DNA of 64,000 nucleotides. Origin: Eukaryota sp. TZLM1-RC. Its lineage: Eukaryota; Protista; Metamonada: BaSk clade. The translations under genes were made by a program, and so were the position numbers. Within the stretch, counting starts at the first letter, position 1; every line of letters begins with the position of its first letter. Where the stretch lies: assembly GCA_040285825.1 (NCBI GenBank), contig JAUPSS010000004.1, forward strand, positions 5,919,784-5,983,783. The letters are read 5' to 3'. A model generated the notes under the pieces. The model did no database searches. It was not told the DNA's origin and saw nothing but the letters and a program-made list of their open reading frames with translations. Below, piece by piece: positions 9,396 to 61,129 of this stretch.

Positions 9396-9906
9396 ATGTT
9401 TGATGCTGAAGATGATTTTCATAAGAATAATAGAGGTGATGTTATATTACCTGGATTAGATGGAAGTTTCATTTTATTGGATGTAATGTCTGTTGATCCT
9501 TGTAGTGCCTCAAATGAAAGGCTTGTTAATTCTGAAATTCATAATCCTCTTTCAAATGCTGAAAATTTCAAACTCAAAAAATACAATGAACCTTTGTCCA
9601 AATTGGCCAGTCTACAGCATGCAAAATACAATTTATATCCATTTGTATTTTCCCTTTTTGGTTCACTTGCACCAACTGCTTTACGTTTTTTTGGATGATT
9701 TTGAATTGATTGTAAAGAGAAGAACTGGGAGAAATTTCAACAGATTGTTTTGGCAAAATAGAATTGTGTTTCCTATTTTTAAGGGGATGTTGAAGATGGT
9801 TTCTGATGCTTTGCTGTCTCTTGGTTCTCACTATGAGAGAGTTGCATCTAGTGTTTTTGTTTTGGGAGAGATGGATTTTTTAGATGTTGATTTATAGGTT
9901 TTGAAT
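9396..9906 (+). mobile_element. family C RLE retrotransposon 3' part, interrupted at its 3' end
   Basis: RGDVILPG..LLDVMSVDP..K-x-KKY; near-identical to 45670-46169; its tail resumes at 10589-10623. Confidence 0.85.
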
Positions 9907-10588
9907 TCACCTCAACTCACTTTGCGCCATGCTCTAAATTGCTCTAAATTGATAACTTATCGTTCTTCATTACATGATGCTGTTAGAGACACTGTTTTCA
10001 ATATGGCACAAACTGCAAGGATATCGTGTATCAAAGAGCCCCTGCTGAAAGAAACACTTTCTCTGAATAATTTTGGTTCTGATGATAGAGGTGATGTATA
10101 CTGTGATTGGATTGATAATTCTGAAGCTATTGTTGACTTTGTCTCATGTAATGTTGCAAACGATACTTTGGTTCACAGAAGAAAACTTAATCCTGTGGCT
10201 GCTCTGGATTTTAAAGCAAAAGAAAAACATAGAAAATATGATAAAGAAATTGAAGATGCAAATATCGATAGAAATACACAGCTGGTTTTTATTGCTTTTC
10301 CATTTTCGATAAATGGAAGATTATCAGTTGAAGCAGAAACTTTTTGGATGACTTCCAAAAAAATGGTGAAAGAAAAAACAATGAAAAGATTTGATATTTT
10401 TTTATGGCGTTCACGGATTCAATTTGCCATTATTAATAGATTACCGCGGTTTTTCAATCGAATTAGAGAAGCTTTAGCTAGACAGCAAGCAAATCAAGAT
10501 TTTGTAGAGGAAATCTTGGTTTAATGATAGTCGTCCCATTAGTTATGATTTAATTTAATCAAGTGTGCAAATTCAATAAATTAATTTT
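9903..10588 (+). mobile_element. 5'-truncated family B RLE retrotransposon nested in family C
   Basis: Near-identical to 40958-41635; 12-bp TSD TAGGTTTTGAAT at 9895-9906 and 10589-10600. Confidence 0.9.
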
Positions 10589-33029: not shown

Positions 33030-33810
33030 TTCCCACAAAAAATGAAAATACAATCCTGTTTTGGTAGTAAACACGATTGAAAATTTTTCCAGTTCTTTCC
33101 TTTACAACTACAACGAAATCCTCAAGGAAAGCCATAGCAGCCTTACGCAAAGATCCAAGCAAAAAAAACAAAGAAGCATAAATTATATTGGGCATGAGAA
33201 TTTTCATTTAAAGAGGAAAGGGTTCAGCGTATTTAGCAATTTTATATTTTTCGCCAGCAAGAAGAGGATTATTGAGGTTTGAGTTAATGAAATGCTCGTT
33301 AGAAGAATTACAAGGGTCTATGGACATGGCGTCTAAAATAGTAAAACTACCATTCAAGCCGAGAACAACCAAATCACCTCTTGTCAGACCCATAGAAGCT
33401 CTGCTGTAGCGCGTACTTTCAATATTGGGGTCATTGAGAATTAATTTTGATTGCAGATGCTCTAAAAAGGAATCTACTATATGTGATCTGCACACATAAA
33501 TTTGGTCCCTGACATTATTATGCACTTTACTTTTAAATGTAATGAAATGTTTACAGTTCAAAAGATGAGTAAACAAAAGAGGTTTACCACATTTACAAGT
33601 TAAATGATTGGACAAATTGTTCGGCTACAGAAAACAATGAAAACGCATGTTTCAAAGCCATTCATTGTTTTTTAACAAAAGTCCATAAACAGAGGGAATT
33701 TGACTTACTAATGCAGCAGCAGAACTATTACGAATGTCCTTTGAAAAATTTCCGAAAGCAAGATTTTCAGTTTTGGCCAAGCCAAGTCTTACTTCGTAAT
33801 CCAAGCTTCT
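33030..33810 (-). mobile_element. family D RLE retrotransposon 3' fragment
   Basis: CKCG..HLLNCKHFITFKSKVHNNVRD..RGDLVVLG..LDAMSIDP..K-x-x-KY. Confidence 0.85.
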
Positions 33811-34076
33811 TATTTAATCATGATTGTCGCTAGGTGTGGATGATTCTGGTGCAAAGACTATTACTGCAGAGATTGTCGCAAAAATAGCAGACACTGTAAG
33901 GAGTTTGGAAAGCCTAAAAATAATTCATTATGATGTTTATTGATAGTATTTTATTTTTTATTATACTATTTATTTTTATTCAATTATCCATTAAATAGTT
34001 TCATATATTTTATTCATTGAAAAGAATGAAGAATTTCATATATATTTTCTATATATTATATTATATTATATTATTA

Positions 34077-35260
34077 CATTTTTTTAGTCCTAAATTTGGT
34101 GGAGTTGGTTTTTCAAAAGCAGAGTATTTATGCAAAAGTGCTTTTATTGGTGGTATGAAAAATTTTCTTTTTGAATGGAAACTTCGTTTTGATCATATTC
34201 CTTTGAATGAATCACATCCTTTATTAATTTCTCTTGAAAAATGGTGCAAGAACTACCTGTTGATGTTTGGAATAGGAGTTTTCCTTCAAGTTTGCCTACT
34301 GTGCCTTCGAGATCTTTCACCAATCTTCATCTTGCTGTTGTGAAATTACAGAAGTCTGTTCTTATTGGTTTTTGAAGACCTGGATTTTTCTAAACGACTT
34401 AGTGTGACTAAGATTAATAATCCCGTCTTTGCTGCCTTTTTATCAGACATTCAGAACTGTACTAGTTTAATATCTCAGCAACCAAGGCCATTTGGTCTTC
34501 ACTTAACAAATGAAGCTTGGAAACAAAACATGCGGTTGAGATTAGGGATGTATCCAAGTGGTCTTTTGGACAATTCTTATTGTATTTGTAACAAAAAACC
34601 TACTGCCAATTTTCGTCATATTGTGAGCTGTAAGAAATTTCTCCAATATAGGTCAGTTCTTCATAATGCCGTTCGTGATGTGACATATGAGATGTTCAAG
34701 TGTTACAATTTTAGTTGCAAAGTAGAACCTTTGTTGAAGCATTATAGTGATGATAATCTTTTTTTAATTCACGTCGAGGTGATTTAATTGCTCCTTTTGT
34801 GGATTCCTCTCAAGTTGTTGTTGATTTCACTACAGTTGATCCCTTTGCTTTGGTTTATCGCGATGATGTTTTACTTAGTACTAATGGTCATTTGAACAAG
34901 GCTGAAATAAATAAATATACCGGATAAATATACTGAGATATTAAATGATTTAAATAAGAACCTTTATTCGAAGTTTTCGTTTGTTCCTTTTGCCTTTTCG
35001 ATTTTTGGCAACATTGGACAATCCGCCTTGAATTTCATCAATGATTTTGGTAATTTATGTCGTTCAAGTGGTAAGAATTTTGCAGAGAATTTATGGAAAA
35101 ATCGTATCATTTTCGCTTTGTACAGAAGTGTTCCCAAGTACTTGAGTTTAATGATGTCTAAACTTTATAAGGATTCATCAAGAGTTGGCGTGGAGAATTT
35201 AGTTTCTTATGTGTTTTAGTTTGTTCTATTTGATTCTTCGTAGAAAATAAATAAATAAAT
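34077..35260 (+). mobile_element. family A RLE retrotransposon, 5'-truncated
   Basis: SPKFGGVG thumb motif, then RLE near-identical to 1925-2697; preceded by short (ATTAT)n; ends in (AAAT)n. Confidence 0.88.
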
Positions 35261-35516
35261 ATTATTATTATATTATATTATATTATATTATATTATATTA
35301 ATTTATTGAATTTGCACACTTGATTAAATTAAATCATAACTAATGGGACGACTATCATATTATATTATATTATATTATATTATATTATATTATATTATAT
35401 TATATTATATTATATTATATTATATTATATTATATTATATTATATTATATTATATTATATTATATTATATTATATTATATTATATTATATTATATTATAT
35501 TATATTATATTATATT
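35261..35516. repeat. (TTATA)n microsatellite interrupted by an inverted ~58-nt family B 3' UTR (35301-35358)
   Basis: Pure ATTAT repeats on both sides; insert is the reverse complement of 41578-41635. Confidence 0.92.
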
Positions 35517-35522
35517 CAGCGA

Positions 35523-37542
35523 TTTTTGCTACTGATGTCTTATTTCGTCAAAAATGAATCCAATGTTTGCATGTCATTGGATTTTTAGTAATGCTTTCAA
35601 TTCGCTAAGTCGTCGGAGTATCCATGGTGCTCTATTGCAATATATGCCAGAATTAATACCATATTTTCAATCAACATATTGCACATATTCTAATTTACAT
35701 TTTGGTAACAACATTTTGATTTCATCAAGTGGCGTAAAGCAAGGAGATCCGTTAGGACCACTTTTGTTTTGTTTGGCCATTCATCCTATTCTACTGCAAA
35801 TTCAAGAGATGTTTCCTTCACTAAAAATGATTGCATATATGGATGATGTTGTGCTTATTGGTGAATTAAATATTGTGAAAAAAGCAACTGTATGTTTTAA
35901 AGAATTATTTACCAAAATTGGTCTCCGACTTAATTTACTTAAATATGTTTTGTTATCGAATTCTCCAGTTTCCACAATAATTGATGATATTGAAATTCAA
36001 GCCAAATTATATTCAATTGATGCTATTCGTCATTTGGGTTCGTTTTTAGGAAATAATGATGAAATTACCAAAAAAATTGTTTGAAAAGTTGAACTCAATT
36101 TCTGACAAAATTGACCGAATGATGAATTTAGATATAAAAAAACACATCAAATTTACCATTATAAGACTGTGTTTTTAGTTCCAATTTTAATCATATATTT
36201 CGATCTACAAATCCTCTCGTCACTAGACCTTTGGCTCAAAAAGTTTAATGAGTTACGTGCAAAAGTTCTGTCTCAATTACTGGGATGTAAAATGTTTCAA
36301 ATTCCAGATCATGCTTACCTTAGTCCACAATATGGTGGTTTAGGGTGGACGAAGGCTTCTATTCTTACCTCGTGTGCTTTTGTTGGTGGATGCAGAAATG
36401 CAATCTTTGAGTTCTCCGAAAGATTTGCAGATTGGGAAGATTTATTGATGACAACGCAAAGTTCCACTGTTTTTGCATTAAATGAAGAAATTTCAAGAAT
36501 TGATGTAGAAAAATGGGGTCGATGTTTTCCCCAATCATTCAATGGCAATATTCCAGAAAAAATGTTTTAAATTTGAAGTACACTCTTCGAACATTACAGA
36601 AAAGATTGACTGGAATGTATGAAAAGATCTTTATAATAATATTTGCAGCTCGGCTGTTTTTAAATCAAGATCTTCACTCATTGTTATTGGAAAAGGGTGT
36701 TTGTGAAAACAAGGTGTCAGATTCTTCACTTTTTGTAACCATTGTACCACGAAGATTTGGATTGTGTGCTACTAATGAAGCATTTGTAACAAAAATGAGA
36801 TTATATTTGAACATCCCCATTAACCAATTATTATCAAAAGAAAAATGTATTTGTTCGAATTCACCTCAACTCACTTTGCGCCATGCTCTAAATTGCTCTA
36901 AATTGATAACTTATCGTTCTTCATTACATGATGCTGTTAGAGACACTGTTTTCAATATGGCACAAACTGCAAAGGATATCGTGTATCAAAGAGCCCCTGC
37001 TGAAAGAAACACTTTCTCTGAATAATTTTGGTTCTGATGATAGAGGTGATGTATACTGTGATTGGATTGATAATTCTGAAGCTATTGTTGACTTTGTCTC
37101 ATGTAATGTTGCAAACGATACTTTGGTTCACAGAAGAAAACTTAATCCTGTGGCTGCTCTGGATTTTAAAGCAAAGAAAAACATAGAAAATATGATAAAG
37201 AAATTGAAGATGCAAATATCGATAGAAATACACAGCTGGTTTTTATTGCTTTTCCATTTTCGATAAATGGAAGATTATCAGTTGAAGCAGAAACTTTTTG
37301 GATGACTTCCAGAAAATGGTGAAAGAAAAAACAATGAAAAGATTTGACATTTTTTTATGGCGTTCACGGATTCAATTTGCCATTATTAATAGATTACCGC
37401 GGTTTTTCAATCGAATTAGAGAAGCTTTAGCTAGACAGCAAGCAAATCAAGATTTTGTAGAGGAAATCTTGGTTTAATGATAGTCGTCCCATTAGTTATG
37501 ATTTAATTTAATTAAGTGTGCAAATTCAATAAATTAATTTTT
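35523..37542 (+). mobile_element. family B RLE retrotransposon, 5'-truncated in RT
   Basis: QGDPLGP, AYMDD, RLE; near-identical to 39628-41635 apart from homopolymer indels. Confidence 0.93.
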
Positions 37543-38293
37543 TTATTATATTATATTATATTATATTATATTATATTATATTATATTATATTATATTATA
37601 TTATATTATATTATATTATATTATATTATATTATATTATATTATATTATATTATATTATATTATATTATATTATATTATATTATATTATATTATATTATA
37701 TTATATTATATTATATTATATTATATTATATTATATTATATTATATTATATTATATTATATTATATTATATTATATTATATTATATTATATTATATTATA
37801 TTATATTATATTATATTATATTATATTATATTATATTATATTATATTATATTATATTATATTATATTATATTATATTATATTATATTATATTATATTATA
37901 TTATATTATATTATATTATATTATATTATATTATATTATATTATATTATATTATATTATATTATATTATATTATATTATATTATATTATATTATATTATA
38001 TTATATTATATTATATTATATTATATTATATTATATTATATTATATTATATTATATTATATTATATTATATTATATTATATTATATTATATTATATTATA
38101 TTATATTATATTATATTATATTATATTATATTATATTATATTATATTATATTATATTATATTATATTATATTATATTATATTATATTATATTATATTATA
38201 TTATATTATATTATATTATATTATATTATATTATATTATATTATATTATATTATATTATATTATATTATATTATATTATATTATATTATATTA
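37543..38293. repeat. (TTATA)n microsatellite, about 150 perfect copies
   Basis: Uninterrupted 5-mer repeat, ~750 bp. Confidence 0.98.
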
Positions 38294-41200
38294 GTATTAA
38301 TTTTTTATTTTTTTTCCTCTACATATAACCGTTTAACTTAAGACCTGGCTGAACCGAGATCATTGCTTCTATTCTTTCTTGTTGATGCCTGAATCAGTTT
38401 CTGATTCTAATGGAGTCAAAAGAATGAACGATAGTCAACAAGATGCTCAAGACGTCCTTTCCACCTCTCCTCCTCAACCTCTTCTCTCTTCATTTTTGGA
38501 CAAAAAAAATTTTGATCAAGAATTTTTAGACAATCACGATGAAAACAAAGTTTGTTCAAAAACAAAGCCACGCTCCTACAGATGCTCAAAGTGTCGACAA
38601 CAGGGACATAATGCTCGAACATGCCCCAATGTTGGAAAAAATGATGCGGCAAATTCTGAAACAAAATGTAAAAGAAAATTTATTAGAAGGAAAGAGTCTA
38701 AGGTAGAACCCATAAATAATGCTCCACAAATTGTTGCAAAACCAGTTTGCAACCGATTAATGCACAAAACTTGCAACACTTGTGGTATTTCTTTTAGAAA
38801 AAATGCAAAAGGAAAAACTTCTGACCGCTGCTTGAAATGCCGCATAGTTGATAACTACCATCCTCCTATAAGAATACCTCAAGAAATTCATCCGACCAAA
38901 TGCAATGAATTTGCTTTCGTTTTTCAAAGATTTTTGGATCAATTATGTAAAGGAAAGTATGCTATCAATATTATTTGGGAATTTTTTGGTTCTTTTTGTC
39001 CTCCTTTTGAACAAAATTTCGTTAATATTTCCGAAGATTTAACTAATATAGCTCCGAGAAATCAGTCATCCGAGAAATTAAGTAAAATTTTTGAAGACAA
39101 ATGCTTTGACAACAAATGGTCCAAGGCTTTGTCAGCTTTAAGTCCCGGAGTTAAAGCACCGAACAATGAAAATACAATAGATAAACTGAAAATACTTCAT
39201 CCTTATGAAGACCCTATAATGGATCAAAATTTTTACGGCACATACTGGGAAAATTATCCATTGATGCCATCAGAAGTTTTTTCGGTTATCAAAAAGAGAC
39301 CTCGTGGTAAGTCTGCCGGACTTTCTGGTATTACTATTGATCATGTAAAAGCCGCGATTATTTCTTCAGAAGATTGCCTTGGTTTATTGACCAAATTTTT
39401 CAACCAAATATTATCTGGTCAACGCAAATACCCAGAAGAATTAAGAAGTTCTCGTTTGACTGCACTTGTCAAAAATTTAAAAATGGATGTTCGTCCTATT
39501 GCAGTCTCTGAGAGCTTACACAATATTTTTTCTGCGTGTTGCTTAAGCAGGTTCAATGAAAAAGCTAAAAAGATTTTATTACCCTTTCAATATGGTATAA
39601 ATACTACAGATGGAGTCTCTTCAGTGAATTTTGCTACTGATGTCTTATTTCGTCAAACTGAATCCAATGTTTGCATGTCATTGGATTTTAGTAATGCTTT
39701 CAATTCACTAAGTCGTCGCAGTATCCATGGTGCTCTATTGCAATATATGCCGGAATTAATACCATATTTTCAATCAACATATTGCACATATTCTAATTTA
39801 CATTTTGGTAACAACATTTTGATTTCATCAAGTGGCGTAAAGCAAGGAGATCCGTTAGGACCTCTTTTGTTTTGTTTGGCCATTCATCCTATTCTACTGC
39901 AAATTCAAGAGATGTTTCCTTCACTAAAAATGATTGCATATATGGATGATGTTGTGCTTATTGGTGAATTAAATATTGTGAAAAAAGCAACTGTATGTTT
40001 TAAAGAATTATTTACCAAAATTGGTCTCCGACTTAATTTACTTAAATGTGTTTTGTTATCGAATTCTCCAGTTTCCACAATAATTGATGATATTGAAATT
40101 CAAGCCAAATTATATTCAATTGATGCTATTCGTCATTTGGGTTCGTTTTTAGGAAATAATGATGAAATTACCAAAAAATTGTTTGAAAAGTTGAACTCGA
40201 TTTCTGACAAAATTGACCGAATGATGAATTTAGATATAAAAAAACACATCAAATTTACCATTATAAGACTGTGTTTTAGTTCCAATTTTAATCATATATT
40301 TCGATCTACAAATCCTCTCGTCACTAGACCTTTGGCTCAAAAGTTTAATGAGTTACGTGCAAAAGTTCTGTCTCAATTACTGGGATGTAAAATGTTTCAA
40401 ATTCCAGATCATGCTTACCTTAGTCCACATTATGGTGGTTTAGGGTGGACGAAGGCTTCTATTCTTACCTCGTGTGCTTTTGTTGGTGGATGCAGAAATG
40501 CAATCTTTGAGTTTTCCGAAAGATTTGCAGATTGGGAAGATTTATTGATGACAACGCAAAGTTCCACTGTTTTTGCATTAAATGAAGAAATTTCAAGAAT
40601 TGATGTAGAAAAATGGGGTCGATGTTTTCCCCAATCATTCAATGGCAATATTCCAGAAAAAAATGTTTTAAATTTGAAGTACACTCTTCGAACATTACAG
40701 AAAAGATTGACTGGAATGTATGAAAAAGATCTTTATAATAATATTTGCAGCTCGGCTGTTTTAAATCAAGATCTTCACTCATTGTTATTGGAAAAGGGTG
40801 TTTGTGAAAACAAGGCGTCAGATTCTTCACTTTTTGTAACCATTGTACCACGAAGATTTGGATTGTGTGCCACTAATGAAGCATTTGTAACAAAAATGAG
40901 ATTATATTTGAACATCCCCATTAACCAATTATTATCAAAAGAAAAATGTATTGGTTCGAATTCACCTCAACTCACTTTGCGCCATGCTCTAAATTGCTCT
41001 AAATTGATAACTTATCGTTCTTCATTACATGATGCTGTTAGAGACACTGTTTTCAATATGGCACAAACTGCAAGGATATCGTGTATCAAAGAGCCCTGCT
41101 GAAGGAAACACTTTCTCTGAATAATTTTGGTTCTGATGATAGAGGTGATGTATACTGTGATTGGATTGATAATTCTGAAGCTATTGTTGACTTTGTCTCA

Positions 41201-41635
41201 TGTAATGTTTCAAACGATACTTTGGTTCACAGAAGAAAACTTAATCCTGTGGCTGCTCTGGATTTTAAAGCAAAAGAAAAACATAGAAAATATGATAAAG
41301 AAATTGAAGATGCAAATGTCGATAGAAATACACAGCTGGTTTTTATTGCTTTCCCATTTTCGATAAATGGAAGATTATCAGTTGAAGCAGAAACTTTTTT
41401 GGATGACTTCCAAAAAATGGTGAAAGAAAAAACAATGAAAAGATTTGATATTTTTGTATGGCGTTCACGGATTCAATTTGCCATTATTAATAGATTACCT
41501 CGGTTTTTCAATCGAATACGAGAAGCTTTAGCTAGACATCAAGCAGATCAAGATTTTGTAGAGGAAATCTTGGTTTAATGATAGTCGTCCCATTAGTTAT
41601 GATTTAATTTAATCAAGTGTGCAAATTCAATAAAT
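38294..41635 (+). mobile_element. full-length family B CRE-like RLE non-LTR retrotransposon
   Basis: Short 5' UTR, single ORF with zinc knuckle + RT + CCHC + RLE, 3' UTR ending AATAAAT. Confidence 0.93.
38385..41578 (+). CDS. RT-RLE polyprotein (~1064 aa if one C is restored near 41094)
   Basis: CSKCRQQGHNARTC, VRPIAV, LDFSNAFN, GVKQGDPLGP, AYMDD, IRHLG, HDAVRD, RGD..D..K-x-x-KY; GAGCCCTG here versus GAGCCCCTG in sister copies explains the frame break. Confidence 0.9.
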
Positions 41636-45234: not shown

Positions 45235-46200
45235 GTTATCTCTATTTAATTTACAGTTTTGCTGTAAAAAGCTTCAACAAAAATTGTCAAAGATTTTTGA
45301 AAGCTTGGATTTTGATGTTAGACTTGGCTTGGCCAAGAAAAAGAATCCCGCTTTTGCAAATCTTTTACAAGATATGTGTGATAGTACTTCTTCTGCCTTA
45401 GTAACAACAATTCCACAAGTTTATGGTACTCTCTTATCCGATTCTGCTTGGACTCTGAATATGAGATTTCGTTCCTTTATCTGGCCTGATAATTTACCTC
45501 ATAATTTAATTTGTAAATGTTCTCGAGAAATTACAACTACTCATTTGTTAAATTGTAAACATTTTATTACTTTTAGAAGCAAGGTTCATGATGCTGTAAG
45601 AGACCAGTTATATTGTATGTGTAAATCTCATAGAATTGAATCCTTCTTGGAACCTTTGTTGTCAAATCTGTTTGATGCTGAAAATGATTTTCATAAGAAT
45701 AATAGAGGTGATGTCATATTACCTGGATTAGATGGAAGCTTCATTTTATTGGATGTAATGTCTGTTGATCCTTGTAATGCCTCAAATGAAAGGCTTGTTA
45801 ATTCTGAAATTCATAATCCCCTTTCAAATGCTGAAAATTTTAAATTCAAAAAAATACAATGAACCTTTGTCCAAATTGGCCAGTCTACAGCATGCAAAAT
45901 ACAATTTGTATCCATTTGTATTTTCCCTTTTGGTTCACTTGCACCAACTGCTTTACGTTTTTTTGGATGATTTTGAAATGATTGTAAAGAGAAGAACTGG
46001 CAGAAATTTCAACAGATTGATTTGGCAAAATAGAATTGTGTTTTCTATTTTTAAGGGGATGTTGAAGATGGTTTCTGATGCTTTGCTTTCTCTTGGATCT
46101 CACTATGAGAGAGTTGCATCTAGTGGTTTTGTTTTGGGAGAGATGGATTTTTTAGATGTTGATTTATAGGTTTAGAATAAAATTAAATTTAAAAAAAAAA
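45235..46200 (+). mobile_element. family C RLE retrotransposon, 5'-truncated, poly(A)-ended
   Basis: CKCS..HLLNCKHF..VHDAVRD..RGDVILPG..LDVMSVDP; A10 at 46191-46200, 26 bp before the Rpn12 ATG. Confidence 0.9.
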
Positions 46201-50405: not shown

Positions 50406-53400
50406 TCACAATGCAAATATTCTAAACGCCTCATCATCCAAGAAATCTTCAAATAAGCCTTCAGAAATTTTGTTAATGGTTTCCTCAGCGACTGAAGCCA
50501 TTTCATTTTGAAAAGCCAAAGAAACAAAGTGTTGAGAAACAAGAACGGGATCGCCGCACGAAGCAACCAAATTTTCAATAAATGCATCTGTTTCGACTGT
50601 TGGTTTACAATTGGGATCCAGTCGACCTCTTAGAGAAGATCCTTGTAATATTCCCATTATTGAAGCCGAATGTGGTGATTTTGAAGTAAACAAATCATGT
50701 GTTGGCTGACTTTGTTTTAGCACTTCAGTAATTGTGGTATCAATGAGAGAAGAAAAGATGTCGTCAGCTGCTTCTTCAAGAAGGGAAACGTCCATTTCAT
50801 CTGGGTATAATTCAGAAATTTCAGAGTAATCATGTTGACCTTGATCACGTGATTGGGGGTCATCAATGGCAACACCTTCCTTTTCAAGCGTTACAGATTG
50901 AACAGCAATGGTGTCTGGCTCTTCAAAATTAGAAATACTTTCAAAAATTTCAGAGTAATCATGTTGACCTTGATCACGTGATTGGGGGTCATCAATGGCA
51001 ACACCTTCCTTTTCCAGCGTTTGTGATTGAACAGCAATGGTGTCTGGCTCTTCAGAATTAGGAATATGTTCAGAAACTGAAATATTTTCAGAAATTTCAG
51101 AGTGTTCATGTTGACCTTGATCAGGTGATTGGGGGTCATCAATGACAACAACTTCCTTTTCAAGCGTTTCTGATTGAACAGCAATGGTGTCTGGCTCTTC
51201 AGAATTAGGAATATGTTCAGAAACTGAAATATTTTCAGAAATTTCAGAGTAATCATGTTGACCTTGATCACATGATTGGGGGTCATCAATGGCAACACCT
51301 TCCTTTTCAAGCGTTTCTGATTGAACAGCAATGGTGTCTGGCTCTTCAGAATTAGAAATATCTTGAGAAACTGAAATATGTTCAGAGATTTCAGAGTAAT
51401 CATGTTGACCTCGATCAGGTGATTGGGGGTCATCAATGGCAACACCTTCCTTTTCAAGCGTTTCTGATTGAACAGCAATGGTGTCTGGCTCTTCAGAATT
51501 AGGACTATGTTCAGAAACTGAAATATTTTCAGAAATTTCAGAGTAATCATGTTGACCTTGATCACGTGATTGGGGGTCATCAATGGCAACACCTTCCTTT
51601 TCAAGCGTTTCTGATTGAACAGCAATGGTGTCTGGCTCTTCAGAATTAGGACTATGTTCAGAAACTGAAATATTTTCAGAAATTTCAGAGTAATCATGTT
51701 GACCTTGATCACGTGATTGGGGGTCATCAATGGCAAGACCTTCCTTTGCCAGCGTTTGTGATTGAACAGCAATGGTGTCTGGCTCTTCAGAATTAGAAAT
51801 ATCTTGAGAAACTGAAATATTTTCAGAAATTTCAGAGTAATCATGTTGACCTTGATCACGTGATTGGGGGTCATCAATGGCAACACCTTCCTTTTCAAGC
51901 GTTTCTGATTGAACAGCAATGGTGTCTGGCTCTTCAGAATTAGGACTATGTTCAGAAACTGAAATATTTTCAGAAATTTCAGAGTAATCATGTTGACCTT
52001 GATCACGTGATTGGGGGTCATCAATGGCAACACCTTCCTTTTCAAGCGTTTCTGATTGAACAGCAATGGTGTCTGGCTCTTCAGAATTAGGACTATGTTC
52101 AGAAACTGAAATATTTTCAGAAATTTCTGAGTAATCATGTTGACCTTGATCACGTGATTGGGGGTCATCAATGGCAACACCTTCCTTTTCCAGCGTTTGT
52201 GATTGAACAGCAATGGTGTCTGGCTCTTCAGAATTAGAAATATCTTGAGAAACTGAAATATTTTCAGAAATTTCAGAGTAATCATGTTGACCTTGATCAC
52301 GTGATTGGGGGTCATCAATGGCAACACCTTCCTTTTCCAGCGTTTGTGATTGAACAGCAATGGTGTCTGGCTCTTCAGAATTAGGAATATGTTCAGAAAC
52401 TGAAATATTTTCAGAAATTTCAGAGTAATCATGTTGACCTTGATCACGTGATTGGGGGTCATCAATGGCAACACCTTCCTTTTCAAGCGTTTCTGATTGA
52501 ACAGCAATGGTTTCTAGCTCTTCAGAATTAGAAATATCTTGAGAAACTGAAATATGTTCAGAAATTTCAGAGTAATCATGTTGACCTTGATCACGTGATT
52601 GAGGGTCATCAATGGCAACACCTTCCTTTTCAAGCGTTTCTGATTGAACAGCAATGGTTTCTAGCTCTTCAGAATTAGAAATATCTTGAGAAACTGAAAT
52701 ATGTTCAGAAATTTCAGAGTAATCATGTTGACCTTGATCACGTGATTGGGGGTAATCAATGGCAACACCTTCCTTTTCAAGCGTTTCTGATTGAACAGCA
52801 ATGGTTTCTAGCTCTTCAGAATTAGACATATCTTGAGAAACTGAAATATGTTCAGAAATTTCAGAGTAATCATGATGACCTTGATCACGTGATTGAGGGT
52901 CATCAATGGCAACACCTTCCTTTTCAAGCGTTTCTGATTGAACAGCAATGGTGTCTAGCTCTTCAGAATTAGAAATATCTTGAGAAACTGAAATATGTTC
53001 AGAAATTTCAGAGTAATCATGTTGACCTTGATCACGTGATTGGGGGTCATCAATTGCAACACCTTGAGTTTCAAGCGTTTCTGATTGAACAGCAATGGTG
53101 TCTAGCTCTTCAGAATTAGAAATATGTTCAGAAACTGAAATATTTTCAGAAATTTCAGAGTAATAATGTTGAGCTTGATCACGTGATTGGGGGTCATCAA
53201 TTGCAACACCTTCCTTTTCAAGCGTTTCTGATTGAACAGCAATGGTGTCTAGCTCCTCAGAATCAGAAATATGTTCAGAAACTGAAATATGTTCAGAAAT
53301 TTCAGAGTAATCATGTTGGCCTTGATCACGTGATTGGGGGTCATCAATGACAACACCTTCCTTTTCAAGCGTTTCTGATTGAACAGCAATGGCGTCTGGC

Positions 53401-56400
53401 TCTTCAGAATTAGAAATATGTTCAGAAACTGAAATATGTTCAGAAATTTCAGAGTAATCATGTTGACCTTGATCACGTGATTGGGGGTCATCAATTGCAA
53501 CACCTTCCTTTTCAAGCGTTTCTGATTGAACAGCAATGGTTTCTAGCTCTTCAGAATTAGAAATATCTTGAGAAACTGAAATATTTTCAGAAATTTCAGA
53601 GTAATCATGTTGACCTTGATCACGTGATTGGGGGTCATCAATGGCAACACCTTCCTTTTCAAGCGTTTCTGATTGAACAGCAATGGTGTCTGGCTCTTCA
53701 GAATTAGGACTATGTTCAGAAACTGAAATATTTTCAGAAATTTCAGAGTAATCATGTTGACCTTGATCACGTGATTGGGGGTCATCAATGGCAACACCTT
53801 CCTTTTCAAGCGTTTCTGATTGAACAGCAATGGTTTCTAGCTCTTCAGAATTAGAAATATCTTGAGAAACTGAAATATGTTCAGAAATTTCAGAGTAATC
53901 ATGTTGACCTTGATCACGTGATTGGGGGTAATCAATGGCAACACCTTCCTTTTCAAGCGTTTCTGATTGAACAGCAATGGTTTCTAGCTCTTCAGAATTA
54001 GACATATCTTGAGAAACTGAAATATGTTCAGAAATTTCAGAGTAATCATGTTGACCTTGATCACGTGATTGGGGGTAATCAATGGCAACACCTTCCTTTT
54101 CAAGCGTTTCTGATTGAACAGCAATGGTTTCTAGCTCTTCAGAATTAGACATATCTTGAGAAACTGAAATATGTTCAGAAATTTCAGAGTAATCATGATG
54201 ACCTTGATCACGTGATTGAGGGTCATCAATGGCAACACCTTCCTTTTCAAGCGTTTCTGATTGAACAGCAATGGTGTCTAGCTCTTCAGAATTAGAAATA
54301 TCTTGAGAAACTGAAATATGTTCAGAAATTTCAGAGTAATCATGTTGACCTTGATCACGTGATTGGGGGTCATCAATTGCAACACCTTGAGTTTCAAGCG
54401 TTTCTGATTGAACAGCAATGGTGTCTAGCTCTTCAGAATTAGAAATATGTTCAGAAACTGAAATATTTTCAGAAATTTCAGAGTAATAATGTTGAGCTTG
54501 ATCACGTGATTGGGGGTCATCAATTGCAACACCTTCCTTTTCAAGCGTTTCTGATTGAACAGCAATGGTGTCTAGCTCCTCAGAATCAGAAATATGTTCA
54601 GAAACTGAAATATGTTCAGAAATTTCAGAGTAATCATGTTGGCCTTGATCACGTGATTGGGGGTCATCAATGACAACACCTTCCTTTTCAAGCGTTTCTG
54701 ATTGAACAGCAATGGCGTCTGGCTCTTCAGAATTAGAAATATGTTCAGAAACTGAAATATGTTCAGAAATTTCAGAGTAATCATGTTGACCTTGATCACG
54801 TGATTGGGGGTCATCAATTGCAACACCTTCCTTTTCAAGCGTTTCTGATTGAACAGCAATGGTTTCTAGCTCTTCAGAATTAGAAATATCTTGAGAAACT
54901 GAAATATTTTCAGAAATTTCAGAGTAATAATGTTGACCTTGATCACGTGATTGGGGGTCATCAATGGCAACACCTTCCTTTTCAAGCGTTTCTGATTGAA
55001 CAGCAATGGTGTCTGGCTCTTCAGAATTAGAAATATCTTGAGAAACTGAGATATTTTCAGAAATTTCAGAGTAATAATGTTGACCTTGATCACGTGATTG
55101 GGGGTCATCAATTGCAACACCTTGAGTTTCAAGCGTTTCTGATTGAACAGCATTGGTGTCTGGCTCTTCAGAATTAGAAATATCTTGAGAAACTGAAATA
55201 TGTTCAGAAATTTCAGAGTAATCATGTTGACCTTGATCACGTGATTGGGGGTCATCAATTGCAACACCTTCCTTTTCCAGCTTACGAGACCTAGCAAGAC
55301 TTCCCTTGAATTCAACAGAACTGCCAATTTCAACACTTGAACGTGGAGAACTTTTGAATAAAGAACCAGTAAACTTATTTTTAATTGCTCGAACAGTGGA
55401 ATCAATATCATTAATAGCTTGCCTCGCCAATGCAGTCCTTTGCAAATAAGCATAATCAGAATAATCAGTGAAACTAGGTACCTTAGGCTTAGGGTTAGGC
55501 TTAGGGTTAGGTTGACGGCTTTGGGTTTCTTTCGGAGCTTGTAGTTCTAATCTGGAAGCTTCTGGTGATTCTTCTTTTTCTATTTCTTTTTCTTCTCTTT
55601 TCTCTTCCTTTTCTTCCATTAATGATGTTTGTAGCAAAGCATCAAAAGTTAAAGGTGTATGACGCTTTGGATTTAATTCTGATGGTTCACCAACTCGATC
55701 CTGGGTAGCTCGCTGTGATTGACAAGTGTCAGGGACGTGGCCTTGACTAGAAGAGCTCACCAAAGGCTCAGAAACACGTGGCACAGAGACATGAGGGTTG
55801 ACTTGCTGTACTTCAGCTAGTATCTGAGCATTTCGAACACACTCGAATAAATCATTTGGAACTTCAAATTCTGTCAAAGTATCTAAAGCCAATTTACCTC
55901 TATTATTTAACTGAGAAGCAGAGAAAAATAAATCCTCAGATTTGGATTGAGATTGATTTGATTGACTAATTGAGTGAGACTGGGTTGATGAAGTAGTATT
56001 TGGTGTATAACTAGAACTGATTGTGGATTCTAGTAATGAATTGGATTGAGAATAAGGTTGTGGATCTTGGACTTCAAGGGATTCATCGAGGAGAACTGGT
56101 TGAGGAACATCGACAATTTTCGTTTTTGACTGCTTTTTTGTGATTTTTGGCTTGCTTGATTGGTTACTAATACTTGAGTCACGTGATTTTGACTGCTTCG
56201 TTACATTTTTGACCCTCTTTTTCTTTGCAGTTTCCTTAAACCTAAAAGGATCTGTATGAGTTTTCAATTTAGATTTTCTTTTCTTTTTGATCCTCGGTTT
56301 TGATGATGACGTCATCAATTTGACTGGTTCAGGTTCGTGGGATTGGCTGATTTCAACAGGTTCATGAATGAATGACATAAAATTTCCATTATCCACACTA

Positions 56401-57794
56401 GACAAAAGGGAAACTATATCAGAAACATCATCAATGACGTCATCAATTGGCTTTGATTGACTCGTGATTGAAAGTTCTTGACTGGTTTCCTTTTTTGAAC
56501 TAGTATGTTCATCAGAAACAGCTTCTAATGACCTCCTTCTACTTGGACTCTCACAATGGTTATCTGTCTGATTGGCAGTTTGATATATACAATCCTTCCC
56601 TAAATCATCGACACCTTGATCAATAGTTTGATTGGTTGATTGTGAGTAATCAATCACGTGATCTGACACATCATCAAGTTCAAATGGAGATGTACACGTG
56701 TCGACTAGTTCGCAGGCTTGAGTTCCAATCTCCATTCCACCAAGTACTTCGCTTTCAAAAACAGGTGAACATCCCCTATCAATAACCTCCGTAGCTTGGA
56801 TAGCTTGTTCAGACTTTGTAACCAAACAAACAGGTTGAGAAGAAATAGGTGAAGGAGGGAGTGGTGATGGGAGGTCAGAATTAGTGGAAATAGATTGACT
56901 AATTGAATGATTTGTTGAAGGAATGGGTTCTCGTGGTTCCATGTTCTCATAGGTGGTATCGAGACTGACTTTGTTTGACTTTCTTGGACTTTTCTTGACC
57001 AATGATGTTTTTGAGCTATCATTTTGACCTTTAGCGTGGATCATTGCCTTCATAGCTGGTTTTGATTTTGACCCCCTGCTTTGACCTCCATCAACAGCAC
57101 TTACCTTGACTTGACTCATTTTTGACTCCCTATTTTGACCTTCATTAACAGGACTTTCCTTGACCGCTTTCCTTTCTTCCTCCAACTCAAACAACAGATG
57201 TTCCCTTAACCAATCTCTTGGACCACTTTGTTTCTTCTCCTTATCAATACGAGCTGCCCTCAGCTTTGAAGTTTCATCCTTAATGTCTCTTAATAACTGC
57301 CGACGTGCTCTATTTTGTGCTAATTCCTCTGGACTCATCACGTGATCTGAAACGTCATCAATAGCAATCAGTTGCCGGTCTCTTTCTACCTGTGATTTGA
57401 TATGATACGTGGCCAACTTTGCTTTCTCTTGTTTAAGCTCTTCTACCGCTTTTCTCTCTGTTTTCACCCTTCTTTCTTCTTCCAATCTTCTTCTAGCACG
57501 CTCACGTTGTCTTGACCATTGTTGACGATTAAACTCTTCTATGGGTTTTATTCGTTCTTTAAATCGTTCTATTTTAGCTTGTGGGGGGCTTGGTTTTGGC
57601 AACGGTGACACACCACGTTCCAGTCGTCGACGGACAGCTTCATGAGCAGCTTGTCTGCGTTTCATACGTTCCTGTTCTGCTTCTTCTATTTCTTTACGCT
57701 GTTGTTCTGCACGACGCTTTTTACGGAGGGCTTCAAGTTTCAATTTACGTTCAATTTCTCGTCGGACCTTGTCACCAGGTCTATTGGAGGACAT
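50406..57794 (-). CDS. 2462-aa protein: charged coiled-coil N-terminus, Ser-rich linker, ~30 acidic 49-aa repeats, short helical C-terminus
   Basis: Uninterrupted 7.4-kb ORF; function unknown. Confidence 0.85.
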   Translation of the reverse strand: MSSNRPGDKVRREIERKLKLEALRKKRRAEQQRKEIEEAEQERMKRRQAAHEAVRRRLERGVSPLPKPSPPQAKIERFKERIKPIEEFNRQQWSRQRERARRRLEEERRVKTERKAVEELKQEKAKLATYHIKSQVERDRQLIAIDDVSDHVMSPEELAQNRARRQLLRDIKDETSKLRAARIDKEKKQSGPRDWLREHLLFELEEERKAVKESPVNEGQNRESKMSQVKVSAVDGGQSRGSKSKPAMKAMIHAKGQNDSSKTSLVKKSPRKSNKVSLDTTYENMEPREPIPSTNHSISQSISTNSDLPSPLPPSPISSQPVCLVTKSEQAIQATEVIDRGCSPVFESEVLGGMEIGTQACELVDTCTSPFELDDVSDHVIDYSQSTNQTIDQGVDDLGKDCIYQTANQTDNHCESPSRRRSLEAVSDEHTSSKKETSQELSITSQSKPIDDVIDDVSDIVSLLSSVDNGNFMSFIHEPVEISQSHEPEPVKLMTSSSKPRIKKKRKSKLKTHTDPFRFKETAKKKRVKNVTKQSKSRDSSISNQSSKPKITKKQSKTKIVDVPQPVLLDESLEVQDPQPYSQSNSLLESTISSSYTPNTTSSTQSHSISQSNQSQSKSEDLFFSASQLNNRGKLALDTLTEFEVPNDLFECVRNAQILAEVQQVNPHVSVPRVSEPLVSSSSQGHVPDTCQSQRATQDRVGEPSELNPKRHTPLTFDALLQTSLMEEKEEKREEKEIEKEESPEASRLELQAPKETQSRQPNPKPNPKPKVPSFTDYSDYAYLQRTALARQAINDIDSTVRAIKNKFTGSLFKSSPRSSVEIGSSVEFKGSLARSRKLEKEGVAIDDPQSRDQGQHDYSEISEHISVSQDISNSEEPDTNAVQSETLETQGVAIDDPQSRDQGQHYYSEISENISVSQDISNSEEPDTIAVQSETLEKEGVAIDDPQSRDQGQHYYSEISENISVSQDISNSEELETIAVQSETLEKEGVAIDDPQSRDQGQHDYSEISEHISVSEHISNSEEPDAIAVQSETLEKEGVVIDDPQSRDQGQHDYSEISEHISVSEHISDSEELDTIAVQSETLEKEGVAIDDPQSRDQAQHYYSEISENISVSEHISNSEELDTIAVQSETLETQGVAIDDPQSRDQGQHDYSEISEHISVSQDISNSEELDTIAVQSETLEKEGVAIDDPQSRDQGHHDYSEISEHISVSQDMSNSEELETIAVQSETLEKEGVAIDYPQSRDQGQHDYSEISEHISVSQDMSNSEELETIAVQSETLEKEGVAIDYPQSRDQGQHDYSEISEHISVSQDISNSEELETIAVQSETLEKEGVAIDDPQSRDQGQHDYSEISENISVSEHSPNSEEPDTIAVQSETLEKEGVAIDDPQSRDQGQHDYSEISENISVSQDISNSEELETIAVQSETLEKEGVAIDDPQSRDQGQHDYSEISEHISVSEHISNSEEPDAIAVQSETLEKEGVVIDDPQSRDQGQHDYSEISEHISVSEHISDSEELDTIAVQSETLEKEGVAIDDPQSRDQAQHYYSEISENISVSEHISNSEELDTIAVQSETLETQGVAIDDPQSRDQGQHDYSEISEHISVSQDISNSEELDTIAVQSETLEKEGVAIDDPQSRDQGHHDYSEISEHISVSQDMSNSEELETIAVQSETLEKEGVAIDYPQSRDQGQHDYSEISEHISVSQDISNSEELETIAVQSETLEKEGVAIDDPQSRDQGQHDYSEISEHISVSQDISNSEELETIAVQSETLEKEGVAIDDPQSRDQGQHDYSEISENISVSEHIPNSEEPDTIAVQSQTLEKEGVAIDDPQSRDQGQHDYSEISENISVSQDISNSEEPDTIAVQSQTLEKEGVAIDDPQSRDQGQHDYSEISENISVSEHSPNSEEPDTIAVQSETLEKEGVAIDDPQSRDQGQHDYSEISENISVSEHSPNSEEPDTIAVQSETLEKEGVAIDDPQSRDQGQHDYSEISENISVSQDISNSEEPDTIAVQSQTLAKEGLAIDDPQSRDQGQHDYSEISENISVSEHSPNSEEPDTIAVQSETLEKEGVAIDDPQSRDQGQHDYSEISENISVSEHSPNSEEPDTIAVQSETLEKEGVAIDDPQSPDRGQHDYSEISEHISVSQDISNSEEPDTIAVQSETLEKEGVAIDDPQSCDQGQHDYSEISENISVSEHIPNSEEPDTIAVQSETLEKEVVVIDDPQSPDQGQHEHSEISENISVSEHIPNSEEPDTIAVQSQTLEKEGVAIDDPQSRDQGQHDYSEIFESISNFEEPDTIAVQSVTLEKEGVAIDDPQSRDQGQHDYSEISELYPDEMDVSLLEEAADDIFSSLIDTTITEVLKQSQPTHDLFTSKSPHSASIMGILQGSSLRGRLDPNCKPTVETDAFIENLVASCGDPVLVSQHFVSLAFQNEMASVAEETINKISEGLFEDFLDDEAFRIFAL
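50815..55280 (-). repeat. 147-bp coding tandem repeat (~30 units)
   Basis: Unit approx EKEGVAIDDPQSRDQGQHDYSEISENISVSQDISNSEEPDTIAVQSETL; variant blocks recur at a 1323-bp (9-unit) offset. Confidence 0.97.
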
Positions 57795-57879: not shown

Positions 57880-58160
57880 ACTTTGTACTGTGAATTTCAC
57901 TTATCATGCATTCCCCTGTGAAATTCACTCCTGTTTTCAACTTTCTCAATGTCTACTCACAGGCTGTAAGAGACATGTAGCATCATTTGACAAAGACAAT
58001 CATGATCTTCATCAATGGGCTACCTCACTTAAATACACCTACTGCATTCACAGAACAAAGCCTCGCGACTTGATGTATCTAAGTGGATCTACCAAATGCT
58101 ACTAAGGTATTTGTAGATCGGTCTCAAAAGTTTTTGTTTCTGTATGCTCACGTTCCCTAT
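57880..58160 (-). ncRNA. candidate Fanzor omegaRNA scaffold
   Basis: Directly 3' of the Fanzor ORF; stem-loops at 58086-58119, 57949-57976 and 57890-57928; boundaries inferred. Confidence 0.4.
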
Positions 58161-60120
58161 TCATCTCCTCAGCAGAGCATCTGGGCAAATGTATCTTTCC
58201 GGCCACAATTCCGCTTTCTTCTTAATTTGAATATTTTTTGCAGCGGAAATATCTCTGTCATATACTATTTGACACTCAGTACAAATACGCATCTGCCATG
58301 AGCCTGCTTGAATATTCTCGGCCATGCAACAACTTGACATTTTGCTTGTATTAAATTCACTGGTTGACAAGTGCTTCACGTCCTTTTGATAACACAACCA
58401 TTTTCTGAAAGCCCTTGCTGATCCATATCGATTGACTTTTCGGCAATGAGAAGGGAAATTAGCAGAACCCACAGCAAGATAGAGTTTTTCAGGATGTCCA
58501 GCCAGACTTTGAAATTTGTTGAGACTCTCTCTGAACCGTCTCTCTTTTCGTCTGCGGTTATCAAATTTAATTATTTTCCATTTCTGGCGATTACTTTCCA
58601 AATACACTTTCCTCCTGACCAAATTCCAATGGTTCAAATATTGGTTGAAATTTTGAACGGAATATTGGTTGGGAGAGTGTTTACTGGGTGAAGGTTTTGT
58701 CATGTATCTTCTGCCAGTTGGACAAGGGATAACTCCACATTGATTATCATTTAAGAAGTAACCACATAATCTTGATTGGCCAAGATCAACGCCGATAAGG
58801 GGCCTTTCAGGTAAAATTTCGACTGGATGTCTACGTCTTCGACGGGGCATTTTTTTAGTACCCTTCAACTGTGTTTCTCTGGTTTTGTTGGCATTAGGGT
58901 CACTTTTCATTTCACTTTTTGATCTTCTTTTCTTTTTCGGTGGTTCATCCAGCTCATCTGTGTTTTCTGAGTCATTATTTTTACCTTCAAAGGTCAAAAG
59001 CAGTTCATTACCATTAGTTTTCAATAAAATTTTGTTAAATCTATTTTTCAAACTTTTTCTGTTGATATTGAATTTTTGGTAAGGACATTGTTTGAATACT
59101 CGTTTCAGACATGTATTTTTGATAAACTTTGTTTTGGAAGATGATCCTTCAATAATTGGAAATTTTTTTCACAGAGTGGAAAATTTGTGAAGGTACCTCA
59201 ATAAATTTAGAACCTTTATGAGAAGCTAAAGGTATTATTCTAAATTTCTTCCAGCAATGCATATGAGAAAAAGAAAGTGAGTAAGTATTGTGAAATTTTA
59301 AGATTGAAGAGAAAAAGCTCACTAATTTCCTTTGATGAAAAAAGTGATTTTTATCATGTGAGGACAGTAGGGAGGCAGTGGTAGGAAATCTTTGAAAGAG
59401 ATTCAAGATAAACCTACATGCATTCAATAAAAAAAATCTTTCTCTTGAATTATTCAAATTGAAATTGATGAGGTATTCAAGAACAGAATCAACTACTACT
59501 TCCTCGGGTTGGGCTAGTAGTTCATCTGGCAAAAGTGAAAGAATATTATTTGCAAAGACATTTGTTTTATTCAGGGCTCTACAATGAGCACGAATAAAGT
59601 TTTTTGTCCAGGATTGACAAATTTTGGGTAAACATGTCTTAACGTTGGAGGCCAATTGACGAGCACGACAGGCAAGATAAGAAGAAAGCCCTTTTCTATT
59701 GATAAAATTACAGTTCTGGGACTGCAGCCAATCATTGAGGAAAAGATTGAATGAATTTCTGTAAGGCACTAAAGAATTTTCCCACACAGAAACAAGAGAC
59801 CTGTCTTGTGGGCATTCAGGAAGAAATCCATTGTAAAAGATATGGAGTAATTGGCGTTGGCCTTTAGATGTGGAAGGCTTTGGAAAAGAACCAGTGGTGA
59901 TGACGGTCATAAACAGATACCATACATCCTGTTCCACTAAAGCTCTTGATGCCAACGGAAAATTTAGAAGAAAAGATTGAAGTAATAAAGAAGCTTCATG
60001 ACAAATCTCGGTGACCACAGGAAGGTCAGTCCGAATTTGTTGCACCGCTGCAGGGGTCAGCAGCGAGTTAAGTGCACAAGACCGAGTGAATACACGTGAT
60101 ACAGAGGGGGTGTCTGACAT
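58161..60120 (-). CDS. Fanzor1-like RNA-guided RuvC endonuclease (~652 aa; one-base frameshift in A7 at 59163-59169)
   Basis: RuvC-I LIGVDLG, LAVG (Gly at the canonical TnpB Glu site), SEFNTSK, SSCC..CTEC, RuvC-III YDRDISAAKNI, KTNG (TDG-like); N-terminal ORF RSCALNSLL..VTEICHEASLLLQSFLL resembles Fanzor1 N-termini. Confidence 0.85.
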
Positions 60121-60326
60121 GTAGTGAGAATAAAGAGCTCATCTATCAAATTTTACACTTGTCACCCATTTTCGACTTCTGGTTGCCTATTCTGGGAGGT
60201 TTTTAACCCTCAACTTGGTTTTGGGAGGTTTTCACTATTCCCACACTTTCCCCTCACTTCATAAACTAGGTTCATAAACTAGGTATCCTTTGCAATAGTT
60301 TCTGGAATTTCAACACTATGTAACTC

Positions 60327-60755
60327 ATGAAAGACGCTCTCAGCATCATCAACAGATTAGTCCACGATACTTCTTTGTCTAAAGAACGTTTCTTTGTTGG
60401 TTTTGAGGATAGCTTTGGCGGTGTATTCTTCCTACCTCTTCACGATTTTCTTGCCTTATCTGTACCATCTCACAGAATTCGCTACATATCTAAAGGAAAC
60501 TCAATTCTCTGGTCTCGCACAAAATGAATCAACCTTATTGGCTCTGTTGCACCTTCTGTTTCTTTATTCTCATCTCCAACACCTGGTGTTCTCTCCCGAT
60601 ATTTTCCTCCTCATGCTACTGGTAGAAAGAATTTCCAGTTACCCTTCTTCTCTAACATTGTTTCTTGTAGTGTAGGTGTTCATCATACATTGGCACTCTC
60701 TGCTTGTGGTAATTGCTATGGATTTGGTCTGAACAAATCTACCAATTAGGCAACA
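60327..60755 (+). pseudogene. MJ1316 (DUF504/LENG9-type) domain followed in frame by an RCC1-like repeat; in-frame TGA at 60525
   Basis: IINRLVHD..FFVGFEDSFGG..VPSHRIRY..LWSR, then after the TGA: INLIG..IVSCSVGVHHTLALSACGNCYGFGLN. Confidence 0.65.
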
Positions 60756-61129
60756 ACTCAATGGAAAATAAATTCCACAGAAATGATACTATCAATAATG
60801 ATTGAAGTTTGTTAACAATAATTGAGTTCTGCGAAACAGTGAAAAGATTTCTGTATGTATGTTATCATGAAGCTTCAGTTGTTTTGATGAACACACAACC
60901 ATACTTTTATGAACAGCAATTATAAATCCTCTATTAATGAGAAAAACATTAAAACAGCCAACAAAAGATTCACATATTTACACTGTTGTGACAGCATGTC
61001 AATGCTAAAACATTAAAATCAAATAATTAAGCCATATTTATTTCTATGCAATACAAATCCAACTATCCTTGTTGTTGAGCTTTCATTGACAAGCTTCTTC
61101 CTAAAGTTAACAGAATGATCATAAGGTAA

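Follow-up and report, generated by a model that had tools for sequence, protein, structure and literature searches.

We identified a Fanzor element in the window, by which we mean the whole 64,000-nucleotide stretch of DNA analyzed here, and interpret it, with a probability of about 0.75, as one copy of a non-autonomous Fanzor1 transposon family that is multicopy and was recently active in Skoliomonas litria. We take this species, a free-living anaerobic metamonad of soda lakes, to be the organism behind the strain name TZLM1-RC. Judged from its letters, the copy combines, once four extra bases are discounted, a single reading frame of 651 amino acids, a complete catalytic triad of D444, E587 and D622, and a conserved tail that is predicted to be structured and has a fixed end. 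The gene lies in two open reading frames (ORFs), both present on the minus strand where the first-pass annotation had placed them, and the evidence supports reading them as one real Fanzor gene for which Fanzor1 is the best assignment.

Both ORFs occur letter for letter on a 6,907,603-bp contig of the TZLM1-RC assembly and, as had been anticipated, are recorded by NCBI as two separate hypothetical proteins (323 and 249 amino acids). The gene is thus hidden in the sense of being split in the annotation, but it is not a lone one: many copies exist, and one of them, KAL0223451.1 (P0076 hereafter), is an intact natural protein of 651 amino acids from the S. litria cluster. The protein cluster of the window gene has 82 members, and all 15 of the members listed come from the S. 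litria genome. Among the best matches listed for the C-terminal piece, those in the source assembly (GCA_040285825.1) were annotated fragments with 70–96% identity. The paper describing the assembly contains neither the word Fanzor nor TnpB (10.1101/2023.05.03.539051), and our literature search found no paper treating Fanzor and metamonads together. Searches were made with the two pieces separately and with the natural proteins P0076 and P0030 (a relative from Skoliomonas sp. RCL) in place of a joined or corrected window protein; the correction of four bases described below was applied only within scripts.

The reading frame is defined by the following features:

58161..60120, minus strand: Fanzor1 coding sequence, 651 amino acids after four extra homopolymer bases are discounted
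59149..60120, minus strand: ORF1 as assembled, the N-terminal helical (REC/WED-type) half, homologous to P0030 and included in the profile match with Fanzor1-like proteins
59163..59169, minus strand: A7 run, A6 in the family, the extra base of which causes the visible split
59268..59348, minus strand: three further extra homopolymer bases (59268, 59343 and 59348), mutually compensating

The two ORFs had been joined earlier by dropping a single base. Deleting one base within 59151–59171 does give an open frame of 652 codons, but the copy carries four extra bases and its proper product has 651 amino acids. The three extra bases at 59268, 59343 and 59348 sum to +3 without creating a stop, and ORF1 therefore seems uninterrupted although some 27 codons near its end are read in the wrong frame. 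Removal of the four bases leaves a frame of 651 codons that has no internal stop and is colinear with P0076 at 97.1% identity and zero gaps, in comparison with 93.9% and a gap for the 652-codon join. On this alignment, the colinearity with P0076 settles the reading frame of the window's Fanzor family. All four extra bases are absent from the dominant contigs of the short-read runs X1 and X2 and from paralogs L002, L003, L004 and L008 of the same assembly. Most likely, they are local errors of the long-read assembly; otherwise they would be very recent private mutations, and the family has an intact member either way.

The latter explanation would make the window copy a real, recently killed pseudogene and leave only other copies, such as KAL0223451.1, able to make the protein. 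We consider this the less likely case, though one with some weight, as most of the paralogs fetched bear stops, deletions or insertions and the short-read contigs may follow a majority path through several near-identical copies instead of this locus. None of the contigs runs from one unique flank through the element into the other, and they may represent other copies; the upstream flank in runs X1 and X2 differs from the window by ~1.4% substitutions and by 224 letters replacing 12 (60758–60771), differences that may stem from another haplotype, strain or duplicate of the flank, or from such a majority path. On the other hand, the four +1 changes all lengthen homopolymers and all fall within 190 bp, with no stop and no other lesion in 1,956 nt, and one 300-nt short-read contig shows no substitutions relative to the window yet lacks two of the extra bases (two gaps). 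The assembly rests on Nanopore reads corrected with Illumina data (10.1101/2023.05.03.539051), which also speaks against a pseudogene, as do the private substitutions. Changes private to the window copy comprised 18 synonymous and 13 nonsynonymous ones (P = 9e-6 versus neutrality, with 21% of sites synonymous; dN/dS about 0.2), and the lineage leading to the window copy has thus been under purifying selection. Changes private to the paralogs comprised 61 synonymous and 143 nonsynonymous ones (dN/dS about 0.63), close to decay. There is next to no probability that the gene is intact as assembled and that the A7 run is bridged by a small intron or by programmed frameshifting. Four GT–AG pairs could restore the frame, and small introns do occur in the organism among the called genes of the loci examined, but all relatives have A6 and read straight through the stretch, and the candidate introns would remove residues that P0076 has. 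Since the natural 651-amino-acid P0076 aligns gap-free, these colinear relatives exclude both an intron and recoding as explanations of the break.

With the frame established, the Fanzor1 assignment proposed in the first-pass annotation remains the best fit to the 651-amino-acid protein, resting on transitive profiles, language-model features and a weak fold match. The C-terminal part matched the Pfam family Cas12f1-like_TNB, a TnpB-type zinc-finger domain, above the cut-off (E = 8e-7). ORF1 alone gave no Pfam, PDB or credible Atlas match, and direct sequence searches of the PDB with P0076, the Skoliomonas profile or pieces reached the zinc-finger region only. ORF1 is part of the same gene, as had been claimed: it is clearly homologous to the N-terminal half of the intact relatives P0076 and P0030 (26% identity over 403 amino acids with residues 581–974 of P0030), and an unrelated N-terminal ORF is thereby excluded. 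Homology to Fanzor1 appears to extend over the enlarged N-terminal half, the link being transitive via a bridging profile. A profile of Skoliomonas proteins only matched a profile of five environmental, Fanzor1-like proteins over 536 columns (P 99.75, E = 3e-27); the latter profile, searched against the PDB, found SpuFz1 as the best match (1.8e-30), GtFz1 (5e-14) and ApmFz2 (1e-7), the similarity to ApmFz2 being confined to the zinc finger. The size of 651 amino acids is above the Fanzor1 bound of about 550.

The features of P0076 in the ESM Atlas were nearest to those of giant-virus (Nucleocytoviricota) DUF8286/TNB clusters of 625–804 amino acids (0.97–0.98), Fanzor1-like proteins with which identity is nonetheless below 25%. 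The nearest HMMER matches outside Skoliomonas were environmental proteins resembling these giant-virus ones, and viral and metagenome contigs yielded no close relatives. A tree built on the RuvC region placed the six Skoliomonas proteins on one branch of their own (95/93) beside the Fanzor1-like proteins, with the two groups together apart from 18 TnpBs (100/100); the tree held no labelled Fanzor2 or SpuFz1 sequence and omitted eight rows without a recognizable RuvC-I motif and three short fragments. A model of 58164–59147 (pLDDT 69) gave 24 Foldseek matches at E ≤ 0.001, all of them TnpB, Cas12 or Fanzor (Z 11–14), and the C-terminal half is thus predicted to have the RuvC fold of these proteins; on the RuvC half, the structure search could not tell Fanzor1 and Fanzor2 apart. 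Fanzor1 is marked by a kinked pair of REC2 helices around the heteroduplex; in the window model, RuvC-I is followed by a 53-residue helix, which is in two pieces in the full-length model of P0030, itself of low confidence (pLDDT 52, pTM 0.34), whose top Foldseek match was SpuFz1 over about 630 columns. Fanzor2 (ApmFz2, PDB 9B0L) and the IS607 pro-Fanzors share the rearranged RuvC triad with the window protein, and their RuvC folds match about equally well; they are, however, shorter and tied to the IS607 serine recombinase, whereas the window element has no recombinase.

The catalytic residues and motifs of the protein are distributed as follows:

58785..58787, minus strand: RuvC-I Asp444 in GVDLG, an invariant column in alignment A8
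58467..58469, minus strand: Gly550 (LAVG) at the canonical TnpB RuvC-II position, invariant in A8
58356..58358, minus strand: shifted RuvC-II Glu587, placed by alignment A8
58251..58253, minus strand: RuvC-III Asp622 in RDISA, placed by alignment A8
58272..58331, minus strand: zinc-finger region with Cys596-Cys597 and Cys612-x-x-Cys615 (Pfam PF07282)
59010..59018, minus strand: TNG motif, aligned with the TDG of Fanzor1-like proteins
58830..58937, minus strand: run of basic residues ahead of RuvC-I (KKKRR ... RRRRR), by its sequence a putative nuclear localization signal

The RuvC triad, the Gly of LAVG and the Cys cluster were all found where they had been reported. G550 and E587 are 37 residues apart and are invariant or nearly so in A8; Fanzors have Gly or Pro at the canonical RuvC-II position, with an alternative Glu some 45 residues further along (PMC10530073), an arrangement present in the window protein. 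The displaced Glu, regarded earlier as characteristic of Fanzors, is indeed there, but Fanzor1, Fanzor2 and some bacterial TnpBs all have this Glu together with the Gly (PMC10530073; 10.1101/2023.08.09.552727), so that the pair does not identify Fanzor1 by itself. Two departures from the consensus, DLG at RuvC-I and SxCC at the first zinc knuckle, count against the Fanzor1 reading. DPG at RuvC-I is highly conserved and the dominant Fanzor signature (10.1101/2023.08.09.552727); the window protein, P0076 and other S. litria copies have DLG instead and keep the catalytic Asp. As the sister proteins P0030 and P0058 have DPG, the alignment indicates that DLG is derived within the Skoliomonas clade, where it is confined to the window's family. 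In the zinc finger, the first canonical knuckle Cys is replaced by Ser (SxCC, not CxxC), and the adjacent CC is common to all six Skoliomonas proteins examined. With this first knuckle, the window protein conforms to the superfamily motif D-X(125,275)-[TS][TS]-xx-C4 zinc finger-X(5,50)-RD (PMC3627910), having 146 residues between D444 and TS, four Cys and RD.

Around the gene, the element consists of the following parts:

57888..60295, minus strand: whole Fanzor element, about 2.4 kb, delimited by homology to paralog L008 and by loose ends of short-read contigs
60121..60295, minus strand: 5' noncoding part with a 13-bp tandem duplication (60258–60283), common to L008
57888..58160, minus strand: 273-nt noncoding tail, a candidate omegaRNA scaffold by folding and conservation
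57888..57928, minus strand: terminal hairpin with an 11-bp stem and a 17-nt loop, followed by AG, with the same end in the window, L002, L008 and L041
57868..57887, minus strand: predicted guide, the flank directly after the element end according to the TnpB/Fanzor rule, different in every copy

The similarity to the full-length paralog L008 (92.5%) spans 60300 to 57888, placing the 3' end exactly and the 5' end at 60295–60300, and short-read contigs have loose ends at 57883–57899 and 60273. L005 and loose ends of contigs show a second type of 5' end. The S. litria assembly contains several copies, each with its own flanks, as expected of a mobile element of a eukaryote. No transposase, recombinase or other second gene was found within the 2.4 kb, and no terminal inverted match of at least 7 nt between the first and last 130 nt of either the window copy or L008. 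The element lacks the terminal inverted repeats (TIRs) of the Mariner, MuDR and Sola types of DNA transposon that carry Fanzor1, as well as the asymmetric TIRs and 5' hairpin that go with non-autonomous Helitron2 elements of the CRe-1 type.

At the 3' end, the element stops with ...CACAG at the same base in the window, L002, L008 and L041, and the flanks beyond differ. The noncoding tail preceding this end folds better than all 200 shuffles (z −3.47) and is more conserved than four-fold sites, with 13 of 243 columns variable in comparison with 26 of 133 (P = 2.7e-5). An Rfam search of the tail gave no match. Folding and conservation suggest that the tail is likely an omegaRNA scaffold, and part of its constraint may serve end recognition. 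An 11-bp target duplication was found at L008, while a candidate at the window, merely a 5-nt match, was dismissed. The TAM could not be read from the flanks, both ends being available in only two copies; AACTA precedes both of these, but at L008 it lies within the duplication. The idea that the terminal palindrome is a host promoter motif was not supported, as it occurs almost only inside elements. In L002 (5310–5391), the palindrome GTGAAWTTCAC is found in three copies, 34 and 15 nt apart, the third beyond the usual end. Other mobile elements also surround or interrupt copies of the family: a non-LTR retrotransposon fragment lies within the Fanzor gene of L004 (4397–5749), an LTR-type element starts about 34 nt past the Fanzor end in L008 (7378 onward), and the internally deleted copy in L005 (4844–7918) has directly behind it genes that encode PolB-exonuclease and DUF8286 domains and appear to belong to a second type of Fanzor element inserted at its 3' end.

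From the biology of TnpB and Fanzor, transcription through the tail into the flank would yield an omegaRNA whose last ~15–20 nt are flank sequence. The protein would enter the nucleus by means of its basic stretch, bind this RNA, and cut where a short motif, the TAM, precedes a match to the guide, that is, at an insertion site still unoccupied by the element. With the filled chromatid or allele as template, repair would then restore or spread the element, and movement to new sites would need a partner in trans. Against such activity, the Cr-1 Fanzor, from a similar type of element, did not cleave when assayed in vitro (PMC10530073).

Among described elements, the closest in type are CRe-1, CRe-2 and CRe-3 of Chlamydomonas, non-autonomous Helitron2 elements that carry Fanzor1 only and have no TIRs, a 3' hairpin, variable 5' ends and 7–19-bp duplications (PMC3627910). 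The window family resembles them in its sole Fanzor1 and absence of TIRs, and perhaps in its 3' hairpin and target duplications, one of 11 bp being present at L008 and none recognizable at the window; it differs in having no introns and no asymmetric terminal inverted repeat, nor was a Helitron partner recognized, and because this defining repeat is missing we do not file the element as Helitron2. SpuFz1 (PDB 8GKH) of the SPu-1 element in Spizellomyces punctatus is likewise similar in protein length (633 vs. 651 amino acids), element length (about 2.1 vs. 2.4 kb), the Fanzor as sole gene, the Gly with shifted Glu, and a TDG strand that is TNG in the window. However, SPu-1 is bounded by 33-bp TIRs and TA duplications (PMC3627910), whereas the window element is TIR-less; the proteins differ in DPG vs. 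DLG and CxxC vs. SxCC, and are too diverged for a direct sequence match. Fanzor1 is known from many eukaryotes, and one more is unsurprising; the value lies in a host group, the metamonads, unreported for Fanzor in the literature found. The family also offers a kit for testing, with the intact KAL0223451.1, a predicted RNA end exact to the base and several flanks for guide design.

In the window, the 3' end of the element lies 93 nt before the same-strand start codon of a host gene, and the predicted guide sits upstream of this gene, which starts at 57794. The gene (50406–57794) is a 2462-amino-acid ORF made up largely of a 49-residue tandem repeat. On the other side, a short gene (60327–60755) stands head-to-head with the element, its start about 30 nt from the 5' end. 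It resembles, we presume, an MJ1316 RNA-end-recognition domain. The next same-strand called start follows the element end by 39 nt in L041 and by 65 nt in L002 (a doubtful gene model), and by 63 and 41 nt, respectively, in the RCL loci L007 and L006; in L042 it lies 140 nt after the Fanzor stop. The orientation is the same in 6/6 informative loci, a 1 in 64 outcome by orientation alone, for loci that were not randomly sampled. Three loci (L004, L005 and L008) have other mobile elements downstream or no true end and were not counted as informative, and in the window family the element ends are not exactly at the host ATG.

This placement bears on the possibility that the protein has kept RNA-guided DNA binding but lost the ability to cut, acting as a regulator at host promoters in the manner of the nuclease-dead TnpB repressors. 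We regard such a role as improbable. The guides do correspond to sequences just upstream of host genes, with ends 39–93 nt before same-strand called starts in the window, L041, L002 and the two RCL Exo1-family loci and the 140-nt case of L042, and DLG and SxCC depart from the consensus. However, the three catalytic acids are retained in the window family and across the Skoliomonas families, a multicopy family with decaying members looks like a selfish element and not like a domesticated single gene, and the guide matches its own empty site and no other gene, with no second close match among the loci examined.

The closest full-length relative of the window protein is P0030 (KAL0209630.1, 1323 amino acids) of Skoliomonas sp. 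RCL, with 31% identity over 747 columns (E = 2e-93) and a position as its sister branch in the tree (100/97). The N-terminal part of P0030 is an Exo1 nuclease (E = 3e-39 to human Exo1) with all catalytic-acid motifs present, preceded by a 2A-like DVEPNPG-M motif. Fusion loci were found at L007:4001–7972 (P0030) and L006:4001–8058, and the Exo1–Fanzor junction is read through in 5/6 RCL proteins reaching it, all from one assembly, a stop splitting L001/L006. The window protein and P0030 share the SxCC knuckle and elements that are TIR-less and end close to a host start codon; P0030 differs in its 2A-like motif, Exo1 domain and DPG. The RCL element is 4.5 kb long, with a 5' hairpin, other terminal sequences and only 44 nt from stop to end, in comparison with 273 nt in the window. 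No trace of Exo1 was found in the window or in the S. litria loci examined. Our literature search returned only engineering and plant-editing reviews and general nuclease papers, and in the parts of these available to us no paper described an Exo1–Fanzor fusion.

The fusion suggests a broader but doubtful generalization, by which the Skoliomonas Fanzor1s would form a clade without TIRs and transposase, sitting before host genes and repeatedly recruiting DNA end-processing enzymes, and spreading by RNA-guided breaks and recombination. The reading frame of the fusion is well supported; the uncertainty lies in spread without a transposase. For the elements themselves, a spread in which Fanzor cuts, an exonuclease resects and copying proceeds by recombination or microhomology-primed repair seems to us quite unlikely. 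In the RCL sister family, the exonuclease would be the Exo1 part of the fusion, and in the window family a host enzyme. The element has neither transposase nor TIRs, and the nearest relative is an Exo1–Fanzor fusion with its catalytic residues present, both in line with such a spread. On the other hand, a 3' end exact to the base with a hairpin, and the 11-bp duplication at L008, point to an end-recognizing enzyme; trans-mobilized Fanzor1-only elements are known, including hairpin-ended ones with 7–19-bp duplications (PMC3627910), and the window family has no exonuclease. If the transposase-free model were true, the Exo1–Fanzor fusion could cut and resect in one protein, and the window's solo family would be the exonuclease-free form, a natural control. 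The fusion pairs a predicted RNA-guided cutter with an enzyme that resects breaks for homologous recombination, and comparing the solo and fused forms would directly test whether resection helps the element to home.

Some further observations concern the surroundings of these elements. The right end of the RCL element at L006 (8087–8120) has three tandem 11-nt units and that at L007 two similar ones, which suggests slippage at insertion. A PAZ-Piwi gene of the Argonaute family (L007:110–2803) stands head-to-head with the Exo1–Fanzor element. Elsewhere in the window, there are many copies of non-LTR retrotransposons (9493–10524, 33208–41578 and 45284–46169; reverse transcriptase and restriction-like endonuclease recognized by eye) and an LTR-type element (27749–30330), most of the retrotransposon-type copies being frameshifted. 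A long 5-nt microsatellite (37516–38328), which reads as an ORF of ILYY repeats, lies directly before a retrotransposon. Skoliomonas sp. RCL also contains two solo Fanzor families, the clusters of P0012 and P0014, with DPN at RuvC-I. Their copies include seven of 592 and four of 604–605 amino acids, and, by these equal lengths, both families are probably active.
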